From positions 117,552,001 to 117,616,000 of the forward strand of contig NC_091993.1 in the NCBI RefSeq assembly GCF_044704955.1: a stretch of DNA of 64,000 nucleotides, written 5' to 3'. This document shows positions 9,336 through 64,000 of the stretch, piece by piece. Position numbers and translations under genes: made by a program. The notes beneath the pieces were generated by a model. The model was not told where the DNA came from, ran no database searches, and worked only from the letters and a program-made list of their open reading frames with translations. This stretch comes from Pristiophorus japonicus (taxonomy: Eukaryota). Every line of letters starts with the position of its first letter. Position 1 is the first letter of the stretch.

Positions 9336-12300
9336 ACACGCGTAGGGGCATCATGAGCCAGGTGGCGAGGCCGTACCCTTTGTCTCCCAGTCGCCAGCTC
9401 TGCCCTTCTGCCTGCATCTGAAACATGGCAGATGTAATGAACGCATCATGGGTGCTCCCAGGGTATCTTGCATCAACTGACATGATGCGATGCATGTTGT
9501 CACACACGAGCTGCACATTAATGGAGTGGAAGCTGTTTCTGTTCCTGTACATCTCGGAATCCTCCAAAGGTGCTCGCAACGTGATGTGGGTACAATCAAT
9601 GCAGCCCTGTACCTTGGGCAAACCAGCAATCCTGGAGAAACCCACAGCCCTGTCACACATTGCCTGGGTGATCATGGGGAACTTTATGTAGTCATTCTTC
9701 CGGAGATGTAGTGCAGCAATCACCTGCCGAATGCAGATATGTGTTGCAAGTCGAGAAATAAATGGCGCACACATCCTCAGTTGTAGCTTGGAACGATGCA
9801 GATTCATAGAATGAAAGTGCAGCTTTAACCTTCATTTCGACTGAAAAAGCAGTATTCCTGATGCTTCTAGGTTGCAGGTTTACTAACTCACAGCTCTCAA
9901 TTACAACTTCTTTGCGGAAACTCAGCCTTCTGACACAGTCTGCATCACTCAGGTGCAGGTAGAAACGCCTGTCTCGATATACCCGATGTGGGTAAGGCGT
10001 CCTGCCCATCACCCTATGTGCTCTGAGCTTCCTCATACGATGACGTCAAATCAACTGTCTCCTCCGCAGCACCATCATGCAGAAGGCTTGCAGAAGTTAT
10101 GGCATTGTCAGTATTGCCCCCATGATTAAATGTTACCTTTGCAAGAAGCTCAAAACGGCAGGCAGGCAGGACAAGTTTCATTGTTCTCTCTACCCACAAG
10201 GTCTGTATGGATCATACACAGGTCTGAGCAGGCACAGTGATCGGGAACGCCCCCCCCCCCCCACCCCCTGCAAACCCCCAGGCTTCATTTGATGCGGTGT
10301 CGGCTTCTGATGCCTTCTGTATACATTCCACAGCCCCCCCCGACTCCACTTCCCTGGGCTTGATTTGATGGGTAGTGCAGGCTTCATTTGCCTTCTGTAT
10401 GCCTTCTACAGCCCCCCACCTCCCCCTCCCCCCACCCTGCCGGAAACTTAGCCCCGAGCCCCTGTGTTCGTGCGAATATCAAATTCTGCCGGCCGACACT
10501 CCGATCCTTGAGCCCCGTGGTGGCGTGTCAGTTTTAAAAAGATGAAAACTTCAAGAATTCCATTAAGGTTCCATTTTCTGCGTTTTATGGTAAAAGAATT
10601 AAGCTTTATTCTGCATGTTTAAGTAGAAACATAGAAAATAGCTGCAGGAGTAGGCCATTCGGCCCTTCTAGCCTGCACCGCCATTCAATGAGTTCATGGC
10701 TGAACATGCAACTTCAGTACCCCATTCCTGCTTTCTCACCATACCCCTTGATCCCCCTAGTAGTAAGGACTTCATCTAACTCCTTTTTGAATATATTTAA
10801 TGAATTGGCCTCAACAACTTTCTGTGGTAGAGAATTCCACAGGTTCACCACTCTCTGGGTGAAGAAATTCCTCCTCATCTCGGTCCTAAATGGCTTCCCC
10901 CTTATCCTTAGACTGTGTCCCCTGGTTCTGGACTTCCCCAACATTGGGAACATTCTTCCTGCATCTAACCTGTCTAACCCCGTCAGAATTTTAAATGTTT
11001 CTATGAGGTCGCCTCTCATTCTTCTGAACTCCAGTGAATACAAGCCCAGTTGATCCAGTCTTTCTTGATAGGTCAGTCCCGCCATCCCGGGAATCAGTCT
11101 GGTGAACCTTCGCTGCACTCCCTCAATAGCAAGAATGTCCTTCCTCAGGTTAGGAGACCAAAACTGTACACAATACTCCAGGTGTGGCCTCACCAAGGCC
11201 CTGTACAATTGTAGCAACACCTCCCTGCCCTTGTACTCAAATCCCCTCGCTATGAAGGCCAACATGCCATTTGCTTTCTTAACCGCCTGCTGTACCTGCA
11301 TGCCAACCTTCAATGACTGATGTACCATGACACCCAGGTCTCTTTGCACCTGCCCTTTTCCTAATCTGTCACCATTCAGATAATAGTCTGTCTCTCTGTT
11401 TTTACCACCAAAGTGGATAACCTCACATTTATCCACATTATACTTCATCTGCCATGCATTTGCCCACTCACCTAACCTATCCAAGTCACTCTGCAGCCTC
11501 ATAGAATCCTCCTTGCAGCTCACACTGCCACCCAACTTAGTGTCATCCGCAAATTTGGAGATACTACATTTAATCCCCTCGTCTAAATCATTAATGTACA
11601 GTGTAAACAGCTGGGGCCCCAGCACAGAACCCTGCGGCACCCCACTAGTCACTGCCTGCCATTCTGAAAAGTCCCCATTTACTCCTACTCTTTGCTTCCT
11701 GTCTGACAACCTGTTCTCAATCCATGTCAGCACACTACCCCCAATCCCATGTGCTTTAACTTTGCACATTAATCTCTTGTGTGGGACTTTGTCGAAAGCC
11801 TTCTGAAAGTCCAAATATACCACATCAACTGGTTCTCCCTTGTCTACTCTACTGGAAACATCCTCAAAAAATTCCAGAAGATTTGTCAAGCATGATTTCC
11901 CTTTCACAAATCCATGCTGACTTGGACCTATCATATTACCTCTTTCCAAATGCACTGCGATGACATCCTTAATAATTGATTCCATCATTTTACCCACTAC
12001 CGATGTCAGGCTGACCGGTCTGCAATTCCCAATTTTCTCTCTCCCTCCTTTTTTAAAAAGTGGGGTTACATTGGCTACCCTCCACTCCATAGGAACTGAT
12101 CCAGAGTCAATGGAATGTTGGAAAATGACTGTCAATGCATCCACTATTTCCAAGGCCACCTCCTTAAGTACTCTGGGATGCAGTCCATCAGGCCCTGGGG
12201 ATTTATCGGTCTTCAATCCCATCAATTTCCCCAACACAATTTCCCGACTAATAAGGATTTCCCTCAGTTCCTCCTCCTTACTAGACCCTCCGACCCCTTT

Positions 12301-13907
12301 TATATCCGGAAGGTTGTTTGTGTCCTCCTCAGTGAATACCGAACCAAAGTACTTGTTCAATTGGTCCGCCATTTCTTTGTTCCCCGTTATGACTTCCCCT
12401 GATTCTGACTGCAGGGGACCCACGTTTGTCTTTACTAACATTTTTCTCTTTACATATCTATAGAAACTTTTGCAATCCGTCTTAATGTTCCCTGCAAGCT
12501 TCTTCTCGTACTCCATTTTCCCTGCCCTAATCAAACCCTTTGTCCTCCTCTGCTGAGTTCTAAATTTCTCCCAGTCCCCGGGTTCTCTGCTATTTCTGGC
12601 CAATTTGTATGCCACTTCCTTGGCTTTAATGCTATCCCTGATTTCCCTTGATAGCCACGGTTGAGTCACCTTCCCTTTTTTATTTTTACGACAGACAGGA
12701 ATGTACAATTGTTGTAGTTCATCCATGCGGTCTCTAAATGTCTGCCATTGCCCATCCACAGTCAACCCCTTCAGTATCATTCGTCAATCTATCCTAGCCA
12801 ATTGACGCCTCATACCTTCAAAGTTACCCTTCTTTAAGTTCTGGACCATGGTCTCTGAATTAACTGTTTCATTCTCCATCCTAATGCAGAATTCCACCAT
12901 ATTATGGTCACTCTTCCCCAAGGGGCCTCGCACAACGAGATTGCTAATTAATCCTCTCTCATTACACAACACCCAGTCTAAGATGGCCTCCCCCCTAGTT
13001 GGTTCCTCGACATATTGGTCTAAAAAACCATCCCTTATGCACTCCAGGAAATCCTCCTCTACCGTATTGCTTCCAGTTTGGTTAACCCAATCTATGTGCA
13101 TATTAAAGTCACCCATTATAACTGATGCACCTTTATTGCACGCACCCCTAATTTCATGTTTGATGCCCTCCCCAACATCACTACTACTGTTTGGAGGTCT
13201 GTACACAACTCCCACTAACGTTTTTTGTCCTTTGGTATTCTGCAGCTCTACCCATATAGATTCCACATCATCCAAGCTAATGTCCTTCCGAACTATTGCC
13301 TTAATTTGCTCCTTAACCAGCAATGCTACCCCACCTCCTTTTCCTTTTATTCTATCTTTCCTGAATGTTGAATATCCCTGGATGTTAAGTTCCCAGCCCT
13401 GATCATCCTGGAGCCACATCTCCGTAATCCCAATCACATCATATTTGTTAACATCTATTTGCACAGTTAATTCATCCACTTTATTGCGGATACTCCTTGC
13501 ATTAAGACACAAAGCCTTCAGGCTTGTTCTTTTAACACCCTTTGTCCTTTTAGAATTTTGCTGTACAGTGGCCCTTTTTTTCGGTTCTTCAGTGTTCTTC
13601 ACTCCCACCAAAATTTTGCATAAAAACAACGCCGTCTTTCTGCGCCGATATTTTGATGTGAGCTGGTTTTTCTTAAGTCACCAGAATGTTTTTCGGGAGT
13701 GGTCACATCCGCCAAACGAGGAGAAATTTAAATTGGCCAAACTTACATAATTGTGAAAAACTGGCGCAGACATCAGGTTACACACAAAAAAAACTAACCG
13801 AAAAAAATTGCAACTGAGTTACGCTGGCGCACGTTGATCGGGGAAACTTGTATTTTTTAAACTTAGGCCAGAAAAAACGGCACAAATCACTGAGGAAATT
13901 TGAGCCC
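9334..13907 (-). mobile_element. Degenerate Harbinger transposon (HARBI1-type DDE transposase at ~9334-10150), interrupted by a CR1
   Basis: VQGCIDCTHI...YRNRNSFHSINVQLVCD...VDARYPGSTHDAFI...LGDKGY, with frameshifts; TIR-like end GGAAATTTGAGCCC at ~13894-13907. Confidence 0.8.
10625..13579 (-). mobile_element. Young 5'-truncated CR1 LINE with near-intact ORF2 (APE endonuclease + RT) and one nonsense codon
   Basis: ORFs 12784-13629 and 10714-12780 are in the same frame, separated by TGA at 12784-12786 (TGG in the sister copy at ~34923). Motifs LNARSIRNK, MGDFN, SDH, QGSVLGP, FADD; 3' tail present. Confidence 0.95.
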
Positions 13908-15193
13908 ATATATTCCGGTGGACCAAACCTAAATGGCTGGATTTAGAAATTGCTGAAGAGGGATGTGAGTGCTAGATTTACAATCCAGCATTGTCCCTTG
14001 CCCCCCCTCCTTGAATATTTTCATCGCCACAAGTTACTGGCTGATTTAAACATTAATAAAGGCCTGCGTTGTTTGCACATCGTTATTTTGTCCGCATGTT
14101 CTGAGCTGCTCTATTTGTCTGCAATATTACAGGAAATAAGACATGTCAGGGTGATTCAATAGCAAGCATAACCTGCTTGCACGCACCTCCCAAGATGTTA
14201 ACAACCATATCTGCAGGCATTGGAACATCCTCCTGGCAGCAATTGTCTGCAGTTCATCAAAGGGACAGGTGTAGAGCTGTGCCTTCTGCTGCAAGGACAT
14301 CTGCAGCTAATGTGCAGCATAAAGCTGGCACAGCCAGTGACAGTAATAATAATAACTTTTAATAATAACTTTTATTTATACAGCACCGTCAACGTAGTAA
14401 AACGTCCCAAGGCTCTTCAGAACAATTTTACAACTCGTTAAATATTGACCATTGAGGGAAAGAGAGAAAAAGCGTGAGAAGGAAGCGTAAAAAGAGGTTA
14501 AAGGCTCGGGTCTGAAGCGGCAGCCAAAATGTGCACGCAGATAGACACAGGCGGAAAAATGAAAAAAAAATTCAAATTACATTGTCAATAATACAATAAG
14601 GAGTATACAATAGTAAAATTAGTATAATAAAGATTAATTATAATCAAACAAAATTAAATAATATATAACATAATTATAAATTGTTAAAAGCAGAAAATCA
14701 GCAATTGAAGCAAATTAAATCAGTTATTAGCTGTCTTTAAGGTTCATTCCCTGAATGGCCAGCTATGATCCCAATTCTGGAGGAACATGACGGGTGGAAT
14801 TGTCTGAGAGCCCATGCCACCATCCATTAATGTTAATAAACAGGATATTGTGGCTGGTGCACCCTGTGGTATTCAAGGTCCTGCTGGTGGTTTGGGGGCA
14901 GCTGCCCATTAAGCACAACTCCTGGGAAGGACTTGGATGGAAATCCCAGGGTCATGCTCATCTACATATTGTGGGCAGTTCCCTGGACCAATCCACGGCA
15001 AATGGGACGTATATCCTACTGGGGGGAGGAATATTGAAGCAAATGTTTGCCACAGAGAAACGGACATATAGAAAGCGGCTGAGTGCATGTCTACCAGGAT
15101 GTGGTTCTGACACAGACATATCACTTCACAGGGTCTCCGACTGCTTGGCCAGATATTCTTCATGCTGTTAATAAGCACTGCATTAACTACTTC

Positions 15194-15540
15194 ATCGCTT
15201 CTCGGCCTTTTGGCTAAGATCTGCATAACTAACCTGACCAGCCACCATGACCTCAGGGTGGTTTCTCCCTGGTCAGGAAGGTATATGCTTACATTTTTGT
15301 AAACAGGAGGTGGGTGGGATGGCTTGACCCATCCACCTCCACGGAGGTGTGTGGGGGACCTGACCCATCCACCTCCATGGCACGAACCTGGTATTGCAGT
15401 ACTTCCAGGAATGGTGCAGTGGCTCTAGGCCTTTTGGCTAAGAGCATTGGCGCAGAGTGATCCTTGACTGGTGCAGGGTGACCTCTGGCGTTTGTGACTT
15501 GACAAAGAATTGGAAACGATTGGCTACGAATTTAAAAAAA
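15194..15540 (+). mobile_element. U2 snRNA-derived retroposon (candidate SINE or retrocopy of a U2-variant RNA)
   Basis: Begins with U2 nt 1-28 (ATCGCTTCTCGGCCTTTTGGCTAAGATC). Has an Sm-like ATTTTTG (15293-15299), two stem-loop III-like hairpins, stem-loop IV CCTGGTATTGCAGTACTTCCAGG and an A tail. Flanked by the direct repeat AACTACTTC (15185-15193 and 15541-15549). Confidence 0.88.
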
Positions 15541-15604
15541 AACTACTTCATCTGTCAATCTAATTTACATACCCAGCACTCTGTGGGAAGAGGCGGTGAT
15601 TGAA

Positions 15605-15743
15605 TTTTCCTTGTGTTCGAGCTCTCCCCACAATTCCCTGTGTTCTAGCTCACCACACAATTCCCTGTGTTCTAGCTCTCCCCACAATTCCCTGTGTTCT
15701 AGCTCTCCCCACAATTCCTTATGTTCTAGCTCACCACACAATT
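15605..15743. repeat. 27-bp minisatellite, ~5 units (ACAATTCCCTGTGTTCTAGCTC + TCCCC or ACCAC)
   Basis: Directly visible tandem units; they generate the repeated TIPCVLA peptide in the spurious ORF 15600-15866. Confidence 0.85.
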
Positions 15744-15900
15744 CAGCATAAACTCCTCGCTTGGGTCGCCATTATCCATTCCTCCTTACATTTTAACTCT
15801 CTTGTTTCCAGAATGTTCTATCCTTTGACAACAATTAGATTAGTTCAGTTTGTTAAATATAACTGAGACTATTTCAAGGTCCTGGAGATTAGATCTCCAT

Positions 15901-15935
15901 CAGCTGGCATTTGTGGTTTCATGACCTGTTTCCTG
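15901..15935 (+). promoter_or_regulatory. Putative proximal promoter cluster: E-box CAGCTG, RUNX TGTGGTT, ETS core (CAGGAAA on - strand)
   Basis: Three motifs within 35 bp, about 115-150 bp upstream of the ATG. The combination is typical of haematopoietic promoters, but the motifs are short. Confidence 0.4.
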
Positions 15936-16051
15936 CTAACTACTTTCTCATTTAAATTCCTCCTATCATGTATGTTAGATTTATTTCGATGTGAGAGCTA
16001 AGAGCTGGGTGACTGGCGACAAGTGCTGACCTGAACTTTGCAAAGAAAACG

Positions 16052-16088
16052 ATGTGGATTCTGATTCTTCTCATGTGTTCCCGGCCCG
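16052..16088 (+). CDS. Exon 1: signal peptide [12 protein letters not shown] (phase 1)
   Basis: ATG in AACGATGT context, hydrophobic stretch, strong donor G|GTGAGT at 16089. Joins exon 2 in frame to give ...RPVSGA-LWA, a plausible cleavage site. Confidence 0.85.
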
Positions 16089-19000
16089 GTGAGTGACATT
16101 CAGAGCGGGATATTCAGATAATCAGTGTTAGTTTGAGTCTAGTGTACGGTTCATGCAGCAGCGATGTTTAAATACTTGTAGACATGTAAAGGCACAAGAT
16201 ACTCAGCAAAAATATACAATGTATAATATTTGTGTGAAGTCTTGTAATCTCTTTTTGACTGCACTATATTGTACCACACACATATTTACCAATATATACT
16301 AAACTGCATTATTTATTGTGAATGGAAAATAAAGGGTGCATTTAATTTTTTTTAAAGCTACACGAGTAACATAATCAAGATGCAAAGGACACCCATTTTA
16401 ATCTGTAAAAAGTGATTTTTACTGTAGTCTGATGTCCAATATACACTGAAGACTGCAGTGGTAATAATCCCTCACACAGAACATGTCTGGAGCTTGCAAT
16501 TGTTTCTGTTATTTAAAGTACAGCTGATGAAGTATTGCTTTATGAGGCTCTGTCAGTGACACTGTTTCTCACTGCTAGAGGCTGGGTCTATATTAAGCAA
16601 CCATTTCCTTCTCACTCTTTAACTCGAAACAAGTAAATTTAGCTTTTTCACTCCCGCCCCATATTAACCTAACGGTATTATGCTATAATGGAAGATTGGA
16701 TTAATACTGCCACCTCTCCTCCATTTATGACGAATCTTTATTCCCAGCAATGCTGAACTCCCAGTCTCACCCTACCCTAAGCCACGACAGTTAATTCTAT
16801 TGCATCAAACCTCCCCATGAAGATTTGTGTCTCCAGCTTACCAATTTTACGCAGAATACTTTATGAACTTCTGTACATGCAACTGACGCGAGCCTCTGTC
16901 TGTTTGGCATCTTCCTCTTTTCAGTCCTTCCTCCTTCTGATCTGATCTCATTTACCTCCCCGATTCCACCTTTTATCTTTCCTATCTCCTTTTCCCTATC
17001 AACTCTTCTCTCTGCCTCTTCACATTTTTAACCTCCCTCCGCCATTTTAGTGTAAACTCTTTTCCCACAGCACGAGCTGCTCTCCCAGCAAGGCCATTGG
17101 TCTAATAACTGTTCAACTAAAGTCCCCCCGTCCTTAACAGGCCGCTCCTCTTCCAGAACTGGCCCCAATGTGCCAGGAATCTGAACCCTTTTCTTCCAAA
17201 CCATCTCTCTAGACAAAGAATCATGTCCTTTATCTCATTATTTTCTCTCTCTCCTCGCTCCCCCCCCCGCCCCACCACTATTCTCTCTCCCCACGATGTC
17301 TCTCTCTCTCACTCTCCCTTCTCTCACTCTCCCCACTCTCCCTCCGTTCCCCACTATCTCTCGCTCTCTCACCCCTCCCCCACTCTCTCTCTCTCAACCC
17401 CACCCTTCTTCTCTTTCTCCCTTCCACCCTCTCCTCTTTCTCTCTCCTCCCCGTCTCTCTCTCTCCCCCTTAGTCTCTCTCTGTCTTCCCCTGTCTCTCG
17501 TTTGCCCTATCTCTCTGTCTCTGTCTCACCCGTCCCTCTCTCTCTCCCCCCCACCCCGTCTCTCTCCACCTCATCCCTCCCGCTTCTCGCTCTCTCTCCC
17601 CAGTCTCTCTCTCTCTCTCACTCTGCCATCCTCCCTCATCTCTCTCTCTCCCTCTCTCTCTCCCCTCCCTTCTTCACTCAGTCTCTGCCTCTCATCTCTC
17701 TCTCCCCCTTCTCCACTCTCTCCCACCAGTCGCTCTCTTGCCCTGTCTCTCTCTTACCCCCATCTCATTCTCTCTTCGCCCCCCCCCCATCATTCGCTCT
17801 CTTCTCCCCCCATCTCTCTCTCTCTCACTAACCCGTCTCTCTCTCTCCCCGCCCTATTCTCCACCCCCGTATCTCTCTCTGTTTGCCCTCAATTTCTCTC
17901 TCCCCCCCCTTTCATCTCTCTGTCCGTCCCTCTCAATCTCGCTCCCCTGCCCCTCCTCTCTCTCTCCCCCTTCCTCCTCTCATCTCTCTTTCTGCCCAAT
18001 CTCCCCCCTCCCTCTGCCTCTTTCTCTCTCTTCTCCCCCTCCTCTCTCACTCTCTCTCCCTCCCTCTACTGTCCCTGTTCCCCATTTCTCTGTCTCTCTC
18101 CCCCCCTCTCTCTCTCTTCCACCCCTCTCTTATCTCTCTCAGCCCATGGCTCTATCTCTCCCATCTCTCACCCCCCTTTTCTCTCTCCCCTCTCCTCTTT
18201 CTCTCACCACCCCCCCCCCAAGTCTTGCTCCTCCCAGTCTCTCTGTCCCTCCTTCCAGTCTCTCTCTTCCCCACCCCACCGTCTCTCTCTTTCACCCCCC
18301 TTCTCCCTCTCTATCTTTCTCCCCCATCTTTCTCTCTTCCCCCCCATCTTTCTCTCTTCCCCATCTCTCTCTCCCCCCCATGTCTTTCTCTCTCTCTTAC
18401 CCCCCCACTTTTCGCTTCCCCATCTCTCTCTTCCTCCCTGACTCTCTCTCTCTCTCTCTCACGCCACTCCACCCCCCCATCCCCCATCCCCTAGTCTCTC
18501 TCTCTTTCCCTGCTCCCAGTCTCTCTCTCCCCGCTCGCGTATCTCTCTCTTCCACACCCCCCTTTCCTTTTTCTCGACCCCCCCCTCTCTCCTCTCTCTC
18601 TCTTGCCCCTCCCCTCACGCCAACCCCCCACACCGGTCTCTCTCTCTCTGTGCCCCCAGTCTCTCTCTCCACGCTCGCATATCTCTCTCTCGGCCCCTTT
18701 CATTTTTCTCAACCACCCCCCCTCGCTCTTCCCCTACCCCCACTCCGCCCATCTCTCTCTCTCTCCTCCTTCCCTTCTCTCTCCCCCTTCCCTTCTCCCT
18801 CTCTCTCTCTCCCTCACCCCAGTCTCTCTCGTCCATGGGTTTCTCTCTTTCTTCTCCCCCGTCTCTTTCTTTCCCCCCATCTCTCTCTCTTCCCCCTCCC
18901 CCTGTCTCTCTCTCTCTCTTCCCCCGTCTCTCTCTCTCTCTTAGACCCCCGTCTCTCTCTCACTCGATCCCCCCCAGTCCCTCTCTCTCCCGTGTCTCTC

Positions 19001-22000
19001 TCTTCACCCCATCTTTCTCTCCCACCCGCCACCCCCCCGTCTTTCTCTTCCCCGCCCGCCGCCCCCCCGCCGGTCTCCCTCTCCCTCTGTCCCCAGTCTC
19101 TCTCTCCCTGCTCTCATATTTCTCTCTCCCTCCCTTTCATTTTACTCGACCCTCTCCCCCCGAAGTGTCTTGCTCCCCCCCAGTCTCTCTATCTCTCTTC
19201 CCCCCCATCTCCCTCTCCCCATCATCTCTTTGTCTCTCCCCCACATCTCTCTCTGTCTCTCTCCCCCTTCTCCTCTCTCTCTTCCCCATTTATCTATCTG
19301 TCCCCGCAGACTCTACCAACCCCTCATGTCTCTCTCCCCCAACACCCCCCCACTGAGGTGAATGATCAGCCATGATCTTATTGAATGGTGGTGCAGGCTC
19401 GAAGGGCCGAATGGCCTACTCCTGCACCTATTTTCTTTGTTTCTATGTTTCCACTCTCTTTCTCCGCCCCCCACCTCCCTCCCCCCACATCTCACTGTCT
19501 CTGATCCGTGTGTCTCTGGCTCTTCCCGCTTCTCCACACTCTCTCCCCACATTCTCCTCTCTCCCCCCGTGTCTCTCTCTCTAACTTGCCTCCATGTCTC
19601 TCTTCTCACCGTCTATCTCTTCCGCCCCCCCCGCCCCGTCTCTCTCTCAATTCCAACCCCCCGGAACTCTCTCTCTTCCCCCCTCCCCTGTCTATCTCTA
19701 TCTCATCCCCACCCAGTCTCTCTGTTCCCCGCCTGCCCTCGCTCACCCCCCGCTCTTTCTCTTCCCCCTCTCATCTCTCTCTCCACCCTCTCCCCCCGAC
19801 TCCCTCTCTCTCTCTCTACCACTCCTTTCTCACTCTCTCTCCCTTCATCTACTCTTTCTGTCCACCCTGCTTCTCTGTCTCTCTCTCCCCCCTCCTCTCT
19901 CTCTCTCCCCCCCTCTCTTATTTCCCACCTCTCCCTTTGTGTGTCTCTCTCACCCTTCTCTCTCCCCCCTTTCCTCTTTCTCTCCCCTACCCATATCTTT
20001 CTCCACCATCTCTCTCTCTCTCTTCCCGTCTCTCTCTCCCCCTTGTCTCTCTCCCCTGTCTCTCTCTCTCTCACTCTCGCACCCCCCCGTGACTCCCTCT
20101 CTCTCCCCCTCTCCTATCTCTCTCCCCCTTTCTCTCTTGCCCCTCTCCTCTTTCTTTCTCCCCGCCACCCCGTGTCTTGCACCCCCCAATCTCTCTATCT
20201 CTCTCTTCCCCCATCTCTCTGCCCCATGTCTCTCTCTCTCTCCCTTGTCTCTCTATCACGCCCCCGAATCTCTCTCTTCCCCCCCACCCCGTGTCTCACT
20301 TGTTCTCTTCCCCCCATCTTTCCCTTTTCCCCACATCTCTCTCTTTCCCCCGTGTCTCTTGCTCTCTTGCCCCCCGCCCAACCTGGTGTCTCCCCTCTCA
20401 TATCTCGTTCACACTCACCCCCTCTCACCTATCTCTCTCCCCCCTTTCATTTCTCTCTCCCCCCTTCTCTCTCTCTCTCTCTCTCTCTCTCCCACCCGTC
20501 TCCCTCTCTCCTGCCCGTCTCTCACTCTCTCTCCCCCCTCCCCTTCTCTCTCTCTCTCGACCCAGTCTCTCTGTCTCGCCACCGTGTTTCTCTCTCTCGT
20601 CCCCCCTCGTCTCTCACTCTCTCTTCCCCCCCATCTCTCTCTCACCCCCCCACCTGTCTATCTCTCTCTCAAACCCCCTCTCCGTCTCTCTCTCTTTCTC
20701 TCTCTCCCATCCCCCGTCTCCCTCTCTCTCTCTCCGCTCCTCCCCTCTATCTCCCCTCTCTCCCCCATCTGCCATTTCTCTCTCTCCCCCCTCTCTTCTC
20801 TCCCGCCACCCCCCACCCCCCAGCCACCCCCCCACCCCCGTCTCTCTCTCTCTCTCTCCCTGTAATGTATATAATGACTCAAAATACTTGTTACTGTAAA
20901 CTCACTCAGGTACAAACCTGGTTCAACTTTATTCACAGCCAAAGTGCCACATGACATGATACTCGCTCTTATGTACCAGGGCCCATGCGCACGCGCACAC
21001 AGCCCGATGACCTCCAACAGTGGCACCCCCTGGTGTCTGGTGACCCCAAGTGTCAATACGTAACAACATCCCCTTCAAGATCTTAGTATCAGTCTCTTTA
21101 CAAATTAAGATGGACTGGGGCTCTTCGCTCATGAGTTGATCGCCTCAGTTCAACTCCAGTTCTGGGCAAGCGTTCTGAGACAGTTATGACTGGAGGCTGA
21201 GTAACTAATCTGATGGGAGCGGTAATGACCCTATCAGAGACTGAAAGTCCAGATTCAGTAATGACAGTAGAGACTTCTGATAAATGAATATTGGTTGGTT
21301 GCTCACTGACTGCATCTTCCTCAACTGGTTCCGGTTCATTCGTGTGCCGCAGTTTTATCTGATCAACATGTTTCCTGCATGTTTGCCCATTCTTGAGCAT
21401 GAAATAAACACTCTGTTACCCTCCTTGGCCGTAACAGTACCGGTGATCCATTTTGGACCATGACCATAATTCAGCACATCAACTGGATCGTTGACAGAGA
21501 TGCCATGTGACACAGCAGCAAGGTCATGATACCATTGCTGATTTTGCCGTCTATTTTCAACATGATCATTCAAATCAGGATGGACAAGAGAAAGCTTGGT
21601 CTTGAGACTTCTCTTCATCAGTAGTTCAGCATGTGAGGTAAGCGCGTGAGGTCTTGTCCTGTAACTAAGCAATATACGTGACAAATGAGTCTGCAGTGAA
21701 TCCTGAGTCACACATTTCATGCTTTGCTTGACCGTTTGAACCGCACGCTCTGCTCGACCATTAGACGAAGGTTTGAATGGAGCAGACCTTTCATGTCTGA
21801 TACCATTGAGTTTCATGAACTCCTGAAACTCAAGACGTGTGAAGCGAGATCCGTTATCGCTCACAACAATGTCAGGCAAACCATGAATAGCAAACATGAC
21901 ACAAAGGCTCTCAATAGTAGCTGTGGACATACTGGATGACATGATAATACACTCTATCCACTTCGAATATGCATCCACCAGAACAAAAATCATCTTTCCC

Positions 22001-25000
22001 TGGAAAGGGTCCGCAAAATCGATGTGTATCCTCGACCATGGTTTAAGTACTGCTGGTACTTTACTTAGCTGCATGCATGTATTGCACTGATGCACACATG
22101 ATTCCAGATCAGAGTCAATTCCAGGCCACCAAACATGAGCCCTGGCAATGGCTTTCATCATGACTATGTAGTTCATGTACAAATTTTTCTCTGCCTTTCT
22201 TAGGCATAACAACACGATTGCCCCACAGTAGACAATCTGACTGAATGGATAGTTCACCTTTGCGACGGTTGTAAGGTTTGGTCTCATCACACATTTCCAT
22301 AGGTATTGCAGACCAATCACCATTGAGGACACAATGTTTCACAACCAATAAAATAGGATCATGGCTGGTCCAGATCCTCACTTGTTGAGCAGTGACAGGA
22401 GTTCCTTCACTCTCAAAAGCATCCATTACCAACAGGAGATCTGCAGGTTGAGGCGTCTCCACTTGAAGTGTGAGCAACAGCAGACGACTCAGTGTATCGG
22501 CACAGTTCTCAGTGCCAGGTCTATGATGAATAACATAATCATAGGCAGACAATGTCAACGCCCACCTCTGGGTACAGGACGATGCATTGGTGTTAATACA
22601 TTTGTTTTCCGAAAACAATGAAATGAGTGGCTTGTGATCCGTTTTGAGTTCAAAACGAAGACCAAGCAGGTACTGATACATCTTTTTGACCCCATACACA
22701 CAGGCCAAATCTTTTTCTACCATGCAGTAAGCTCTTTCTGCCTTTGACAAACTTTTTGAAGCATACACAACAGGTTGTAGCTTACCTGATTCATTTGCTT
22801 TTTGTAGTACACAGCCAACCCCATATGATAAAGCATCACCGGCCAATACAAGACGCTTACACGGATCATAGTGAACAAGCAGCTTGTTCGAACAGAGCAA
22901 ATTCTTGGCTTTCTCAAAAGCTCTATCTTGAGATACACCCCAGGCCCAGTTGTTGCCTTTTCTGAGCAGTATGTGCAGTGGCTCTAATAAAGTGCTCAAT
23001 CTGGGTAAGAAATTACCGAAGTAGTTGAGTAGTCCAAGGAATGAACGCAGCTCTGTCACATTCTGAGGTCTGGGTGCATTTTTGATGGCCTTGGTTTTCG
23101 AATCAGTAGGTCTGATGCCATCAGCAGCAATTTTCCTCCCCAGGAATTCAACTTCAGGTGCCATGAAGACACACTTTGAACGTTTCAGCCTGAGTGCCAC
23201 TTTGTCCAGACGATGTAGGGCTTCTTCAAGATTGTTCAGATGTTCAGCAGTGTCGCAACCCATGACCAGAATGTCATCTTGAAACACGACGGTTCTAGGA
23301 ATGGACTTCAGTAGACTCTCCATGTTCCTCTGAAATATGGTTGCAGCCGAACGGATTGCAAAAGGACACCTGTTTTAGACAACAAGTCCTTCATGGGTGT
23401 TGATGCAGATGATGCAGTTTCTTTGAAGTGTCGACAAGCTCCTGCGTCATATAGGCCGGCATCAGATCCAGTTTCGTGAATGACTTTCCACCAGCTAGCG
23501 TGGCGAACAGGTCATCAGCCTTTGGTAGCGGATACTGATCCTGTTTCGGAAATTTGTTAATCGTAACCTTGTAGTCTCCACAGATCCTGACAGTGCCATC
23601 ACTCTTTAACACAGGAACAATAGGATTGGCCCATTCGTTAAATTCGACCTGCGATATGACCCCTTCATGTTGGAGTCTGTTAAGCTCAATTTCGACCTTC
23701 CCCCTCATCATGTACAGAACAGACTGAGCTTTATGATAGACAGGTCTTGCATCAGAATCCAGGTGAATCTGCACCTTGGCTCCAGTAAAATTGCCAATGC
23801 CCTGTTCAAACAAAGAAGGAAACCTCTTCAGCACTTGAGCACACCAAGTGTCATCCACACTTTGATATCATTCCAGTTCCACTTGATTTTCTCGAGCCAA
23901 ATTCTGCCGAACAGCGTTGGACCATTGTCTGGGACGATCCATAATGGTAAGTCGTGAACCACACCATCATACGACACCTTGACTATGCACTGCATATGAG
24001 TTCCTTAGTGCAGGTACGCAACTTGGCATTGACTGGACTCAGCTTAGGCTTCACAGCCTCGGTGCCCCACAGCTTGTCGAATGTTCTTTGGCTCATTATC
24101 GACTGACTCGCACCCATGTCCAGCTCCATTGCTACAGGCACGCCATTAGCTTAACATTAACGATTATCGGCTGGCTCTTTCCCAAGGATGAAAACAGACC
24201 ATACACCTCCTCCTCGGCTTGTGTATCCGAACCAGCACTGGACTGGTCATCATCAGCAATGTGATTAGCGGCACCACGTCTGCTTAGTTCTCTGAAGATG
24301 CCCCATTTTTGAACAGCCTTTCCAGATGTACTGTTTAAACTGACACTGATGAGGCCGATGATTGCCCCCACAACGCCAACAGGGTGAAATCGGATTCGTA
24401 CCAGTTGGCTGACTTTGAGCAGCTACAGGTTTCACATAAGCAGTCGAATAGGCCCTGCCATAAGCAGCTCTGTCAGACGACGACACAATCTTGTTTACAG
24501 TACTTGCCGTGGAGCTCCAACTCTTCAATGATATCTGCCTTAAATTATCATCAGTTGCCATTCATGCCTGGGCAGTCGTGATGGCCTTGCTCAAATCCAG
24601 CGTTTCTGCAGCCAATATTTTCCGAAGGATCACACCATGGTTGATGCCTATCACAAAGAAATCTCACAGCTTGTTTTCCAACGCGTTTCCGAATTTACAC
24701 GCCTCAGCGAGATGTCTTAGATTGGCGACGAATCCCGACACATCCAGACCCTCATCACGAACATGTGGGTAGAAGCGATAGCGTGAGATGATGATCCCCT
24801 CTTTTGGCTTTAGATGTTCACACACCAGAGCGCACAAATCCCCATACTCTTTGTCCGTTGGACGTGCAGGCGAGAAGATTCTTTGAGGTCATAAATTTTT
24901 GGACCACAAACGGTGAGGAAAACCGCCCTGCGCCTAACTGCGTCACCAGCTTCCTCCATTTTGTTGGCCACGAAATACTGATCCAGGCAGTCGATAGAAT

Positions 25001-28000
25001 CCGCCTAATCCTCACCATCCACGAATCTCTCCAGAATTCCAATGGTACCCATTGTGCATGCGAAGATTCTTAAATTATCTCGTCGCCAAATGTAATGTAT
25101 ATAATGACTCAAAAGAGTTGTTACTGTAAACTCACTCAGATGCAAACTTGGTTCAACTTTATTCGCGCCCAAAGTGCCACATGACATGGTAATCACTCTT
25201 ATACACCAGGGCTTGCGCATATGCGCATACAGCCCGATGACCTCCGACAGTAGCGCCCCCTGGTACCTGGTGACATAACACTCCCCCCCCCCCCCCCCAC
25301 CCCCATCTCACTCTCTCTCCTCTTCCCCATCTCGCTCTCTCTCCTCCATTGCTCTCTCCCTCACACACTCATCTCTCTCTCGCCCTCCCGCTCTCTCTTC
25401 CCCACCCCACATCTCTTTGTCTCTGGCCCCCGTGTCTCTCTCTCTCACCCCTTCTCCTCTCTCTTTCCCCCCCCCCTCGCCCCGTGTCTCTCTCTCTCTC
25501 CTCCCCACATCTCGCTCTCTGTCCTCCATCTCTCTCTCTCCCTCCCATCCTGATCTCTCTCTCGCCCCTCTCTCTCTCCCTACCTCTCTCTCTCCAACCC
25601 CGCCCCCCATCTCTCTGTCTCTGGCCCCCATATCTTTCTTTTGCCTCTTCTCCTCTCTCCCTCTCCCCCCCCCCAGCCCCCGTCTCTCTCTCACCCCGGC
25701 TCTCCCTTCCCCCCCCCCCATCCCCGTCTCCCCCCCCTAGCGTCTCTCTCTCTCTCTCTTCCCCCTCCCCATCTCTCTTTTCCCCCCTCCCGTCTCCATC
25801 TCCTTCCCACCCCCATCCCGCTCTCTCTCCTCAGTCTCTCCCTCACTCTCCCCCCCTCATCTCTCTCTCTCCCAACTGTCTCTGCCTCCCATCTCTCTCT
25901 CACCCTTCTCCTCTCACTTTCCCCCCCCCCCCACCCCCGTGTCTCTCTCTCTCTCTCTCTGTCCCTAGTCTCTCTCTTCCATCCACTCATATCTTTCTCG
26001 CTGCCCCGCAACCTCTCTCCCCTCCACTCATTTCTCTCTCCGCCCCCTCTCCTTTCTCTCTTCCCCCACCTGCCCCCGTCTCTCTCTCTCTCTCTCTTCC
26101 CCCTCTCATCTCCCTCTCTATTCCCTCCCTTGCTCTCCCCCCTCTACTCTCTCTCTCCCACCTTCTCCCATCTGTCTCTCTCTCTCCCCGCCAGTCTCCA
26201 CCACCGCCCCCCCCAGTCTCTCTCTCTCCCCAATGTCTCTCTCTCTCTCTCTCCCCTCCCGTCTCTCACTCTCTCCCACCCTCCCATCTCTCTCTCCACA
26301 CCTCTCTCTCTTCCCCCTCCTCTAACATTGTCCCCTGTCTCTCCCTCTTCTCCTCTCTTTCAGTCCCCCTCTCCCTCCGTCTCTCTCTCTCTCTTCCCCC
26401 CCAGTCTCTCTCTTCCCCCCATCTCTCTCTCTTCCCCCATCTCTCCCCCCTCCGTCTCTCTTAGTTCCACCCATTCCCGCACCAAACCCCCCCCCCCACC
26501 GGCTCTCTCTCCCTCCCTCTTCCCCCAGTATCTCTCTTTCCCCTGCCTCCCTCTATCCCCTGCCCCTCTCCCTCATCCCTCTCTCACCCCATCTCATCTC
26601 TCTCTCCCCTCCTCCACCCCCCATCTCTCTCCCCCTCTACCCCCATCTTCCCCCCACCACCCCCGTATCGCTCTCCCACCCCCATCTTTCTTTCCCTGCT
26701 CCTCCTGTCTCTCCCTCTCTGCTCCATCCTGTCTCTCTCTCTCTCCCCCTTCCACCCCGCCCAATCCTCTTCCTCCCCCCCGACTCTCTCTCTCTCTCTC
26801 TCTCCACCCGCCATGCCCCACGCTCCCCGCCCCGGTCTCGCTCTCTCTCCCCCTTGTCTCTCTCTCTCCCTCTTTCCCCCGTGTCTCTCTCTCTCTCTCT
26901 CCCCCCACATCCCTGTCTCCCTACTCCCCGACCCCGGTGTTTCTCTCTTCCTCCCCCATGTCTCTCTCACTCTCCCCCCATGTCACTCTCTCTGCCCCTC
27001 ATCTCTCTCTCTTTCTCTCTCCACCAGTCTCTCTCCTTCTCTCTCCCCCAGTATCCCTCTCTCCCCCCGCCCCTCTGCCTCACTCTCCCTCCCACCTCTG
27101 TCTCTCTCTCTCGCTCCGACCCCTGTCTCATTCTCTCCCTCCCCTCCCGTCACTCTCTCCCTCCCCTCCCCTCCTGTTATTCTCTCCCTCCACCCCCACC
27201 ACCGTTCTTTCTGTTCCTCCCCCACATTTCTCACTCCCCCATGTCGCTCTCTCTTTCCCCCCCCAGTCTCTCTCTCCCCCAGTCTGTCTCTCCTCCACCC
27301 TCCGTCTCACTCTCCCTCCCACCCGTCTCTCTCTCCCCCCCCGCCCCCGTCTCTCATTCTCCCCCCCCACCATCTCTCTCTCCCCCCTTTCATCTCTCTC
27401 TCCCCACCTCGCAACTCTCGCTCCCTTCTCCTCTCTCTCCTCCCTTCTCCTCTCTTTCCCCCCAGTCTCTCTCTCTCTCTCTCCCCCAGTCTCTCTCTCT
27501 CTCCCCAGTCTCTCTCTCTCTCTCTCCCTCTCTACCCCAGTCTCTCTCTCTCTCTCCTCCCAGTCTCTCCCTCTCTCCCCCCGTCTCTCTCTCTCCCCCC
27601 GTCTCTCTCTCTCTCCCCCCGTCTCTCTCTCTCTCCCCCCAGTCGCTCTCTCTCTCTCCCCTCAATCTCTCGATCTCTCCCCTCAATCTCTCGATCTCTC
27701 CCCCCAGTCTCTCTCTCTCTCCCCCAGTCTCTCTCTCTCTCTCCCTCCCCCCTAGTTTATTTCGCCCCCCTCCCCAGCTACCCCCCCCCCACCAATCCTG
27801 TCTGTCTCTCTCTCTCTCTCCCCGTCTCACTCTCTTCCCTCCGCCGCCCCCACCTGCCACTGTCTCTCTCTCTCTCTCATTGTCTTTCTCCCCCTCCTCT
27901 GTCTCCCCGTCTCTCTCTCTTACCACCCCAGTCTCTCTCTCTCTTGCTCGCCCCCCAGTATCCCTCTCTCTCTCTCCCACTCCGACAATGTTTTCTCTCA

Positions 28001-31000
28001 CACCGAAGGCCGCAAAAATATTCCAAATAATGCAAAAGCGGGAAGCAAATCCAGCTCCAGGCTCCAGCGGCAGAAAATGTTTCAGCAGTGATGAGCTCCA
28101 CCGGGCTCATGGTTTGGCTCCCAGTGACTGTATTCAAAAATAAATCATTGGCTGTGAAGCGCTTTGGCACATCCTGAGCATGTGATCAGACACTATATTA
28201 ACGTTTTCTTCCATCACAAACTAGAAGGAATTCACCTGTATCAATAGATGTAGTGGAGATGTAGTACAGAGTGGTAACTCTTATTCAATCGTAACTGTTT
28301 GTATTAAGCAGTTATTTCCTGTTCAATTTCTGAAATATTGTCTCCTCAGTTTCAGGTGCATTGTGGGCAAATAAACGAGTAAGAGGAATTGTGGGAAGAG
28401 CGATCACCATAGAATGTCACTATGACCAAAGGTACCGGTCACATGTGAAATATTGGTGTCAGGGCTGGACTCACCAATGCTCAGTTGTAGTAACAACAAA
28501 TGATCAACATGGATGGGGAAGAAGAGTGTCAATCACAGATAACCAGACAGCAGGAATATTTGTTGTTACGATGAAGGACCTTCGCTCAGCAGATGCAGGA
28601 TGGTACAGTTGTGGTATTACAGAATCAGGCAGCTTCGATAAACGTTTCAATATAGAGCTACAAATATCTCACGGTACGTTTCTCAGAGATGTGCTTTGTT
28701 ACTCTCTACTGAACTGTCTGATCAATGTTGTATCTGGGAGGAAACATGAGAGCTCCGATATCCCGAGGCTCCGCAGCAGTGCAGAGTCTCACAGGTAGTG
28801 GGCAGAGGTGGGGAAATCCGACTCACGGTGCACACTCCCAATCCGTGGCCTGCCCAACTTCCCGACCAGGAATTTCAAGTATTATGGGACTAACAATTCC
28901 TTTAACTACAGGGTGTTGTGCCAGACATCACATGGGAGGCTCACCACATGTCCCTGTTTCTGAGCTGTTTTAAATGTCCCACTGTCAGAGGTTTGCCTTC
29001 AGACTGAAACTAATAGACAATAACAAAAGCAGTGAGCAGCAAGTCGTTACTAATGGTATCAATTCCTTGAAATTAATAAAAATACCTGTAATCCACAGAG
29101 TTTAACAGGTTTCCTGTTTTCTTGATATGATGGGTGGCTCACATCATCAATGAGATATTTGGTCAACTTTACAAACAATATAAAATAAAATTGAAAAGCT
29201 GGTCACTGTTTTGATTGTAAAAGAAGCCTCTTTATTAAATGTTGAGACATTATCTTCCTCCCCAGCATAACCTCCTGATGGATCAACTATTAGATGCAAT
29301 GGTCCGGATATTAACTTCGAGACATGTTCGGTGCAGGGGATCCAATATCGCGTGGGAAACCCGGAAGTAATTTCAGTCTGTCTGTGGCATTTTAACGCAG
29401 CCGGCTCATTATAATTTACTCCCGGGTTTGGCGTTGCATGCGTGGTAACGGGAGTGCTGCGGGCACGCATGATGCGATCTTAACTGAAGTATTTAAAGGA
29501 CCAATCCAAAGATGGAATTCTAGGAGTTGGGCGGTTGGGAACAGAGACGGCAATTGTAGAAGATAGACTCAGGACGCTCAAAGCCCGCGCCCCACTTTAA
29601 CAACGACTCCCTTGACGTACTAAAGGGGGCAGTGAGGAGTCGGGGAGAGATACTCTTCCCCAGAACCGAGAGGAAGAAACCTACAAAGGAGCCATGCCTG
29701 GATGTGACTGAAGATGTCAGCAGCAGGAGCATTATCCCACACTCCTGGAGTCAGCACAGGTAGCTCTTTAATCACCTAACCCGGTTAGGAAAGGTGAGTA
29801 TAGCTGCTCCTTCTACCTGTTGTGCATATCACCCACCCCCTCAGCCTGTCTTTTCAAGTCTACTCCATCATATCACTCCTCACACCCACTTACCTTGCGT
29901 GCACACCCATCCTTCTCTTTCTAAGCACTTCCTCACATCCCCGTCTCTCCATCACCACTGCCACTCGCCCGAATCCTTATACAATTTCATCCCTCTCACT
30001 GATCATCACCCTCATCACATGCACTGCATCCATCAGGTGAACACATGCCAATACCGTCACTCAAAGGTCTGTTATTCCTTCCCAGGGTGCACCATCACAG
30101 GACTCATGCTTACCATGCACCAATGCAGATACTCACACTTCGGTGGGTCCAGTTAGACAGATAGTTGTGTTTTCACCTGGAGACTCACACTGCACAAGTG
30201 AGCAAGAACAGAGAGTGGTGGCAGGGACAGCACCGGAGGGTACAGCACTCTCCAAACCCTGCTCAGCTGGACACAGGTCCTGTACCCGGGGGCCGTTGAT
30301 GAAAAGGATAATCATTTAGGGGCAGCAGATAATCTGCAAAGTACTGACAGGCCTCCCATGCACACTGTCTACAATTGCAGAGGAGTCTACCTCAAGCATG
30401 AGTGGGTTGGTGTCACAGGGCATTGCGAGGATGTCTTCTTCCATGGATAGAATGGCCAACTCTGTGGAACATCAGTCGTGACAATCAAATGAGTCCATGC
30501 AAGCCACAGCCATAGATATCTGGCACCTTAAATAGGATGGCAGACACCTTAGCCTTGTCCTTACAGCACATCACTGATCTGCTCAACAGCAGAGAGGTAG
30601 GAGTGAAGTGCGATTGGGCCATCAGAGGGATGATGGTGAAAGGCGATATGGAAGTGGGGACTCCAATCAAAGTGCTCCCACTTCTCCACCACTGTCCCAC
30701 CCCACCCCTCAGTCGGTACCTGACATGCTGCCTCCTCTCCCGATGGCTGAGTCTGCCCCTGCACAGGTGCAGGTGAAGCAGTCTTTGGCAGGGCCCTCGT
30801 GGGCTCCAAACAGAGGACGGCGACCACTCAGCAGTCAGAGCAGGGAGCTGAGCAGCCTATCTTTACCTCTGCGTAAGTCATAAATGTTGCACCACATAGG
30901 AGCGTTAAGAAAAGTGTAAAGTTTTGTAGTTGCACAAGCCTATGCACAGTGTGTTTGAGAAATTGCTATGCTGTTAAGTAATGGTCCTTGAGCAGAACCA

Positions 31001-62496: not shown

Positions 62497-64000
62497 TGAT
62501 ACGTCCTTACTACACAATATAAATGCACACGAGGCCCATGCTTGAGAGAAGGTCAGTCTGTGACCTGTCCTTTATTCCTTAGCACTCAAGTGATGAAGGT
62601 GGGTGGAGCTTCCCCTTTTATACCTGAAGGTCCAGGTTAGGAGTGTCTCCCACCTAGTGGTCAGTGTTCTCACGGTGTATAACTTATGTCAGTTTATACA
62701 TGGGTTACAATGCTGGTTGAATACATGACATCACCTACCCCCCCAAAGTCTTATTGGGATCACAGGTTGAGTCTCTCTGGTGGTTTACGCTCCCTTGTAG
62801 AGCGCCTGAGTTGGGCGCAGGCCTGAGCGTCTGCTGTTTGCAGTGCCTCAGCCCTGTCCGGACTGCCCACAGTGACTGGGCTCTCCTCCCTTTGGTTCCG
62901 GTGTTCGGTCACCTGTGGTGGAGTGAACTCTATATCGTGTTCTTCCTCTGCTTCTTCTATGGGGTTGCTGAACCTCCTTTTTGTTTGATCCACATGTTTG
63001 CGGCAGATTTGTCCATTGGTAAGTTTAACTACCAGAATCCTATTTCCCTCTTTGGCAACCACAGTGCCTGCGAGCCATTTGGGCCCTGCAGCGTAGTTGA
63101 GGACAAAAACAGGATCATTTACATCAATACATCGCGCCCTCGCATTCCTGTCAATGGTAGTGATATTGTGACTGGCGTCTGCTCTCGACAATTTCTTTCA
63201 TGGTGGGGTGTATAAGGGATAATCGGGTTTTGAGCGTCCTTTTCATTAGTAGCTCTGCGGGTGGAACCCCTGTGAGCGAGTGTGGTCGGGTTCTATAGGC
63301 CAACAGGAGGCGTGATAAGCGGGTTTGTAGGGAACCCCCTTGGAATCTGAGCATCCCCTGTTTGATTATCTGCACTGCTCGTTCTGCCTGGCCGTTTGAG
63401 GCCGGCTTGAACGGTGCCATTCTAACATGGTTAATTCCATTGCCTGCCATGAAGTCTTGGAATTCAGTGCTTGTGAAGCACGGGCCAGTGTCGCTGACCA
63501 AGATGTCCGGTAGACCGTGGGCGGCGAACATTGCCCGTAGACTTTCAACCGTGGCAGAGGATGTGCTTGAATTTAAAATGTCACACTCGATCCATTTGGA
63601 GTAGGCGTCTACTACAACCAAAAACATTTTCCCCATGAAAGGACATGCGTAGTCCACATGGATACGTGACCAAGGCTTGGTGGACCATGGCCAGAGGCTA
63701 AGGGGGGCTTCTGTGGGCGCATGGCCCAGCTGGGCACACGTGTTGCACCTGCGAGCACAAAGTTCCAGATCTGCGTCTATCCCTGGCCACCAAACATGTG
63801 ACCTGGCAATCGCCTTCATCGTGACAATGCCCGGGTGCCCATTGTGGAGTTCTCTGATGAACACCTCTCTGCCCATCTGGGGCATGACTACGCGGTTTCC
63901 CCACAGTAGGCAATCGGCCTGAATCGAGAGTTCATCCTTGCGCCTGTGAAATGGTTTAAATTTCTCAGGGCATGCCCTGTACGTGGCTGCCCAGTCCCCA
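62497..64000 (-). mobile_element. Gypsy LTR retrotransposon 3' end: integrase, polypurine tract and 3' LTR (62497-62730)
   Basis: HNGHPG...HVWWPG...CNTC zinc-binding motif and integrase core (VDY, SDTG, QAERAV); purine tract GGGGGGGTAGGTGA on the - strand before the LTR; runs off the window. Confidence 0.9.

Follow-up and report, generated by a model that had tools for sequence, protein, structure and literature searches.

What kind of sequence begins like U2 small nuclear RNA (snRNA), lacks the part of U2 that recognises the branch point, and ends in a run of A between two copies of a short direct repeat? The question is raised by a unit of 347 bp (15194-15540) in a stretch of 64,000 nt from Pristiophorus japonicus (assembly GCF_044704955.1, contig NC_091993.1, positions 117,552,001-117,616,000, forward strand), the whole of which is referred to here as the window. 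The initial annotation of this window had read the unit as a retroposed and rearranged U2 snRNA, belonging either to a family of short interspersed elements (SINEs) or to the copies of some variant RNA. Our analysis makes it highly likely that the unit is a copy, inserted recently and still polymorphic, of a non-autonomous poly(A) retroposon that exists in many copies, belongs to the SINEU type (the snRNA-headed SINEs described in crocodilians) and would be moved by a long interspersed element (LINE) of the L1 clade.

The features expected of target-primed retroposition by an L1-clade LINE are all present at the locus, in line with the mode of insertion originally proposed: an A-tailed insert, an exact 12-bp duplication (within the range of ~7-20 bp), a nick of the TT/AA type (the slash marking the cut) and a precise empty site. 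The duplicated 12-mer AACTACTTCATC has only two exact occurrences in the 64 kb, one at each end of the unit, where the chance expectation for this 12-mer with at most one mismatch is 0.36 matches. Two details of the initial description nevertheless need to be relaxed. The claim that the unit starts exactly at U2 nt 1 holds insofar as the Rfam match runs from nt 1, but the 5' copy of the duplication also covers the initial ATC of U2, so that the element may start anywhere from U2 nt 1 to nt 4; similarly, the A run and the direct repeat are both there, but the last two of the nine A belong also to the duplication, the length of which is accordingly given as 9-12 bp. The site before insertion reads CATT-AACTACTTCATC-TGTC and offers a TT/AA nick site, which is the kind used by L1-clade endonucleases. 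The flanks of the insertion are unique, low-depth DNA, and the nearest LINE open reading frame (ORF) lies ~1.5 kb away; on these grounds an insertion into a CR1 site targeted by Tx1 elements was rejected.

The age of the insertion can be read from public sequencing data. The contigs of four runs (X3, X5, X6 and X8; all Logan contigs) were compared with positions 13800-17000, X3 being a DNA run from the same organism and probably from the assembly sample itself. One X3 contig joins position 15184 directly to 15541, thereby skipping 356 bases, with 12 letters that fit both sides. A repeat of 12 bp is too short to produce a false join in an assembly built from 31-letter words, and the depth of this contig (37.4) is about half of the 77.7 summed in the adjacent flank bin, which places the insertion on one haplotype and its absence on the other. 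The insertion is hence polymorphic (present/absent) in the sequenced animal and very young. A second X3 contig of nearly the same depth (37.8) has 34 unrelated letters in place of 15612-15717, and this appears to be a further structural difference, carried by the haplotype from which the retroposon is absent. The replaced stretch falls within a 27-bp tandem array (15607-15744; 5.1 copies, 90% matches) that lies directly downstream of the insertion.

The same DNA run bears on whether the unit has relatives, and here the proposal of a SINE family rather than of an isolated copy is upheld. The summed depth in X3 is 98,168 for bin 15191-15297, 906,079 for 15298-15404 and 535,966 for 15405-15511, as opposed to roughly 14-200 on the unique flanks, so that the unit, hairpin and tail included, is ~10^3-10^4 times deeper than its surroundings. 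The hairpin and the non-snRNA tail reach the depth of the U2-like parts, so that ordinary U2 genes cannot account for this depth, and we put the family at 10^3 to 10^4 copies, a figure to be taken as an order of magnitude only, summed contig depth being a proxy. The 5' bin is the shallowest of the three, as expected from the 5' truncation that accompanies LINE-mediated copying. Moreover, X3 has at least seven distinct joints at which 15542/15543 is followed, after 1-16 varied letters, by a return to 15194-15204; these joints are independent head-to-tail copies at other loci, and the downstream member of each pair has its start within U2 nt 1-11. The present copy departs from the family majority at about eight shown positions, among them 15412, where it has a T at the CpG of the canonical AACGG. 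Run X8, from another organism, contains nothing on the unit and only an AT-rich stretch upstream, from which no inference on distribution is drawn; scans of metagenomes for exact patterns across the head/hairpin junction and the junction between second head and tail gave no match, as expected for a vertebrate repeat.

What, then, is the unit made of? A scan of the whole window with Rfam at the gathering threshold returned U2 (RF00004; 15194-15424, plus strand) as its sole match, with a score of 58 bits versus a cut-off of 46, an E value of 7e-09 and coverage of model positions 1-192. The retained parts are those previously listed: the U2 5' end with stem-loop I (nt 1-28), which aligns without a mismatch; an Sm-type site, ATTTTTG, at 15293; a stem-loop III duplicated in tandem (period 36, 2.0 copies and 86% matches in Tandem Repeats Finder, TRF), each copy of which folds into its own predicted hairpin; and stem-loop IV with its loop ATTGCAGTAC at 15393. 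The absences were also correctly described, in that the branch-point recognition sequence GTAGTA was not found within the unit by motif search and model positions 29 to ~84, which comprise this sequence and stems IIa/IIb, are unaligned in the Rfam match. In their place stands a clean, long hairpin of 56 nt (15222-15277), predicted to form from an outer stem of CCTGACCAG with CTGGTCAGG and an inner stem of CCACC with GGTGG. The extension of ~115 nt reported beyond the U2 3' end does exist (~116 nt), but it is not anonymous throughout, as it begins with a second stem-loop I, 15424-15443 matching 15200-15219 at 19 of 20 positions. Only the tail that follows (15447-15533) is without an Rfam match at permissive threshold and without a second copy in the window; it is shared by none of the reverse-transcriptase ORFs or fragments of the window and is presumably what the partner LINE recognises. 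As a whole the unit has a predicted folding energy of -147 kcal/mol (z = -7.3 versus shuffled sequence), and its sole wholly internal ORF of at least 50 aa is a 52-aa antisense frame. Over the doubled stem-loop III, on the minus strand (15329-15380), Rfam also reports a sub-threshold Prion pseudoknot match (31 bits versus a cut-off of 39), which is an artefact of the repeated GGTGG/CCACC motif; the permissive matches as a group (Prion_pknot, mir-1224, U8 and others) were dismissed as chance matches arising from the GGTGG-rich doubled hairpin. The parts of the unit are collected below.

Parts of the U2-headed unit and of its target-site duplication (coordinates in the window).
Feature	Position	Strand	Evidence and remarks
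5' copy of target-site duplication, AACTACTTCATC	15185-15196	+	Exact match; last 3 bases double as U2 nt 1-3; empty-site contig fits 12 letters either side
Head: U2 nt 1-28 (5' end and stem-loop I)	15194-15221	+	Rfam alignment, mismatch-free, posterior ~1
Inserted 56-nt hairpin in place of U2 nt 29 to ~84	15222-15277	+	Fold
U2 single-stranded region with Sm site ATTTTTG (15293-15299)	15278-15304	+	Rfam alignment, motif search
U2 stem-loop III, tandem duplicate (15306-15341, 15343-15377)	15306-15377	+	TRF, pairwise alignment, fold
U2 stem-loop IV (loop ATTGCAGTAC at 15393) and U2 3' end	15379-15424	+	Rfam alignment to model position 192; motif search
Second U2 5' module, incomplete (stem-loop I, ~nt 7-30)	15424-15446	+	Internal alignment
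Tail, ~85 nt	15447-15533	+	No Rfam match; no other copy in window
A run, 9 A	15534-15542	+	Direct reading; last two A common to duplication
3' copy of target-site duplication	15541-15552	+	Exact match; empty-site contig

The 56-nt hairpin, which Rfam leaves without a name, may derive from the 5' third of U1. Compared with vertebrate U1, 15225-15236 looks like the 5' end and 15243-15270 like stem-loop I bearing an altered loop, a resemblance that does not amount to a test. Positions 15243-15264 also weakly match the U1-derived 26-mer quoted for SINEU-2 (PMC4494074), with 28 of 2000 shuffled sequences scoring equally. Recognisable U2 modules start at or near snRNA nt 1 (15194 and 15424), and a possible U1 module would do likewise at ~15225, which is the arrangement expected if a reverse transcriptase jumps to an snRNA template and copies it until running off the 5' end.

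A more tentative part of the picture concerns transcription. Runs X5 and X6 come from other samples of the same organism and from another study, their library kind not being on record; their contig totals (165 and 137 million letters, respectively) and longest records (~15.5 kb) fit transcriptomes. In X5 the three unit bins, in the order given above, reach summed depths of 394,727, 554,365 and 600,225, and in X6 of 251, 14,588 and 9,287, whereas the neighbouring repeat at 14335-14441 stands at 80,580 in X3, 3,957 in X5 and 6,511 in X6. The ratio of the deepest unit bin to this repeat is consequently ~11 in X3, ~140 in X5 and ~2.2 in X6, and differences at the DNA level can hardly account for a 60-fold gap in this ratio between two samples from a single species. 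The unique flanks, furthermore, have zero depth in X5 and are almost entirely missing in X5 and X6 alike, and the depth in X5 is even along the unit, unlike the 5'-depleted profile of X3 DNA. X5 is dominated by one form (15252G, 15255C, 15412C; ~500,000 depth), while 15252G is represented in X3 DNA by a single contig with a depth of ~2,000 of 84,210. From these depth ratios, X5 would rather probably be an RNA library in which a minor subfamily is represented by an abundant full-length transcript. Certain members of the family end in ...CGAATAAA, a polyadenylation-signal context, at a loose contig end in X5 (15512).

As to the polymerase, RNA polymerase III is unlikely in view of internal T4-T5 runs (at 15208, 15294 and 15432) and of a motif search that found no tRNA-type A/B box motifs in the unit. 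A classical RNA polymerase III SINE with a tRNA, 7SL or 5S head was rejected on the same two grounds and because none of these three RNAs is matched in Rfam, either at the gathering threshold over the whole window or in a permissive scan of 15150-15600.

Taken together, these data suggest the following course of events. The source would be a full-length, polyadenylated transcript, presumably made by RNA polymerase II, that starts at U2 position +1 and whose mosaic would run from U2 nt 1-28 through the 56-nt hairpin (possibly the U1 5' third) and the remainder of U2 from the Sm site onwards, in which stem-loop III is doubled, to the second U2 stem-loop I, the 85-nt tail and a short A run. An L1-clade LINE, probably of the Tx1 type, would copy such an RNA into the genome with its endonuclease and its reverse transcriptase, a Tx1 partner being plausible since the crocodilian SINEU elements are tied to Tx1 (PMC4494074); target-primed reverse transcription at the TT/AA nick would then leave the 9-12-bp duplication. 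The snRNA modules were most likely gained stepwise, through a reverse transcriptase that switched template onto an snRNA and ran off at its 5' end. Lastly, the 3' end of the element, TTT/AAAAAAA, is itself a good nick site, and this would explain the head-to-tail copies seen elsewhere.

Several points weigh against the view of a young, L1-moved SINE family with a U1/U2 mosaic head. No L1 or Tx1 LINE is present in the 64-kb window, all reverse-transcriptase ORFs and fragments of which belong to one CR1-like group, and a BLASTN search (word size 7) found no second copy of the unit there, the sole internal match being the second stem-loop I. The A tail, with only 7-9 A, is short for so young an L1-type insertion, AATAAA was not found in the present copy by motif search, and the contig comparison reports the content between the joined ends of the empty-site contig as 'not known'. 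U1 gave no Rfam match at E<=10 in permissive scans of 15150-15600 and of the isolated segment 15216-15300. Finally, the estimate of family size comes from summed contig depth, which is not copy number, and transcription is deduced from ratios in a run whose library type is off record, depth being a poor measure of expression.

How far do these points favour other explanations? The single copy in the window would suit a one-off chimeric processed pseudogene, the product of a single insertion during which a LINE reverse transcriptase changed templates among U2 and other RNAs, and template-switch snRNA chimeras are indeed known from mammals (earlier work cited in PMC4494074). However, the whole unit, including its junctions and tail, is thousands-fold deeper than its flanks in X3, and many contigs carry the unit head to tail at other loci, which leaves this explanation very improbable. 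Even less can be said for a working, or until recently working, variant U2 snRNA gene at the locus: the unit does pass the Rfam gathering score for U2, but neither the branch-point recognition sequence nor stems IIa/IIb are there, a duplication and an A tail frame the unit, and one of the alleles is free of it, so that the probability of such a gene is close to negligible.

A more serious contender, though still an unlikely one, holds that the copies are retropseudogenes of a functional and abundant Sm-class hybrid RNA, which would combine stem-loop I of the U2 type with an Sm site and with stem-loops III and IV, would lack branch-point recognition and would be transcribed from one or a few true genes with an upstream snRNA promoter; the dispersed copies would then be by-products of that RNA instead of a self-propagating SINE. 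The single dominant variant of X5, rare in X3 DNA, fits a few source genes that express one form, and the start of the copies at U2 nt 1, the intact Sm site and stem-loop IV loop and the strong fold (z = -7.3) are likewise in its favour. Against this, transcripts of the snRNA type receive no poly(A), and the retrocopies made from them usually have a truncated 3' end or no tail (earlier work cited in PMC4494074), whereas the copies here all close with an A run that follows a non-snRNA tail; the thousands of copies, the structural subfamilies and the tandem stacking look like a propagating family; no source gene was seen; and the library type of X5 is off record. The more specific proposal that the copies descend from an abundant, Sm-assembling U2/U1-hybrid RNA with a cellular role of its own, e.g. 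titrating snRNP (small nuclear ribonucleoprotein) proteins, is a shade less likely again; such an RNA would come from snRNA-type source genes and would retain the Sm site and the U2A'/U2B'' stem-loop IV without branch-point recognition.

The SINE family that we favour has counterparts of several kinds. Monomeric Alu elements (FLAM/FRAM) are internally deleted derivatives of a small RNA that carry an A tail and are moved by an L1-clade LINE. The unit resembles these and other small-RNA SINEs in these traits, its L1-clade partner being a presumed one, and in having retained the protein-binding hairpins of its parent RNA, but its parent RNAs are RNA polymerase II snRNAs, which have no internal promoter. 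The closest likeness, already drawn in the initial annotation and in our view an apt one, is to the crocodilian snRNA-headed SINEs SINEU-1 to SINEU-3 (Kojima 2015, PMC4494074), the comparison being one of architecture as described and not of sequence aligned to a crocodilian consensus. The shared traits comprise a non-coding retroposon of less than 500 bp with a head from U1/U2 snRNA; a 3' poly(A) tail and duplications of ~10 bp (here a 9-A run and an exact 12-bp duplication); frequent tandem copies, 5' truncation, internal oligo-T runs and, probably, mosaic structure; and an amplified family with one composite structure, for which the evidence here is the depth proxy and the at least seven joints. 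Concerning the mosaic of U1 and U2 pieces, the unit has two separate U2 5' modules, and its putative U1 piece is without Rfam support. SINEU-3, in which U2 nt 1-32 is joined to a later 83-nt piece of U2 and ~40 unrelated nt, comes near the U2 parts of the unit, while SINEU-2, in which a 5' part of U1 precedes a 3' part of U2, would be like 15222-15424 if the hairpin is U1-derived. The growth of SINEU elements has been modelled as repeated 5' addition of snRNA pieces via template switching, and their oligo-T runs were used by Kojima as an argument against RNA polymerase III (PMC4494074).

The differences from SINEU are no less instructive. The host is an elasmobranch-type genome, whereas no SINEU was found outside crocodilians (PMC4494074), and the literature that we searched contained no report of SINEU or of snRNA-derived SINEs in sharks. 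The order of modules differs as well (U2 head, hairpin, U2 body with doubled stem-loop III, second U2 head, 85-nt tail). The present copy is polymorphic, such that the family must be active now or have been so very recently; it sits in unique DNA and not in a preferred transposon target; and one shark sample appears rich in full-length RNA, while no complementary DNA evidence was found for the crocodilian families.

U2 sequence is tied to LINE activity in yet another setting, that of Keno (of the Tx1 group) and Utopia, which are LINEs that insert into U2 snRNA genes, with U2 resuming at nt 39 (PMC4640811), and read-through from a U2 gene could supply a U2 head. The present unit, by contrast, is non-coding and lies outside any U2 gene, and an origin of its junctions at the Keno/Utopia cut site was rejected, given that they fall after U2 nt 28 and ~nt 30. 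Mammalian chimeras of the U6/L1 type and poly(A) retrocopies of snRNAs (cited in PMC4494074) share with the unit an snRNA 5' end from nt 1, an L1-type reverse transcriptase and duplications; they are nonetheless independent single events with varied 3' partners, in contrast to the fixed composite that recurs here in thousands of copies.

The remainder of the window is rich in other repeats. Just upstream of the unit lies a very high-copy repeat (14335-14760), the start of which follows a (TAATAATAACTTT)x2 repeat and the 3' half of which is A-rich and AT-rich; its summed depth in X3 is up to 80,580, versus roughly 14-200 on unique DNA, and it shows many contig ends at 14367-14374 and 14413-14419 along with family-wide substitutions. 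A nearly intact LINE ORF2 occupies 10714-13629 on the minus strand, with the endonuclease at 12784-13629, the reverse transcriptase at 10714-12780 and one in-frame stop between the two, and a second, ~90% identical copy is found at 33025-35108, also on the minus strand; this CR1-like group is further represented by more diverged fragments at ~35.4-36.1, 38.1-39.7, 41.6-43.3, 44.4-46.3, 47.7-49.2 and 60.0-62.5 kb. Fragments of a long terminal repeat (LTR) retrotransposon pol gene are recognised by Pfam at 21355-23323 and 63151-63885 (both minus strand; reverse transcriptase, RNase H, integrase). CT-rich low-complexity DNA (TC and CTCTCCC-type repeats) at 17223-20954 and about 25349-28143 carries long spurious Ser/Leu/Pro ORFs on the plus strand and adds to the strand asymmetry of the window (C 17,523 versus G 12,120).

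For its family the copy is an ordinary one. What is new here is the depth evidence of high copy number, the empty allele and the hint of an abundant transcript, and it remains within known kinds of element. SINEU is nevertheless the only class of SINE with heads from RNA polymerase II snRNAs, and how its members are transcribed had been left open, the crocodilian families being mostly old and no transcripts having been found for them (PMC4494074). A family in a cartilaginous fish that combines presence/absence polymorphism, copies starting from U2 +1 and, maybe, abundant transcription could make the question of SINEU transcription testable. If the copies were after all descended from an RNA with a cellular role, that RNA would count as a new snRNA-like RNA and at the same time as the master from which an active retroposon family springs. 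The family would also supply young insertion markers for the population genetics of elasmobranchs, and it would show that snRNA-mosaic retroposons either arose at least two times in vertebrates or are far older than thought.

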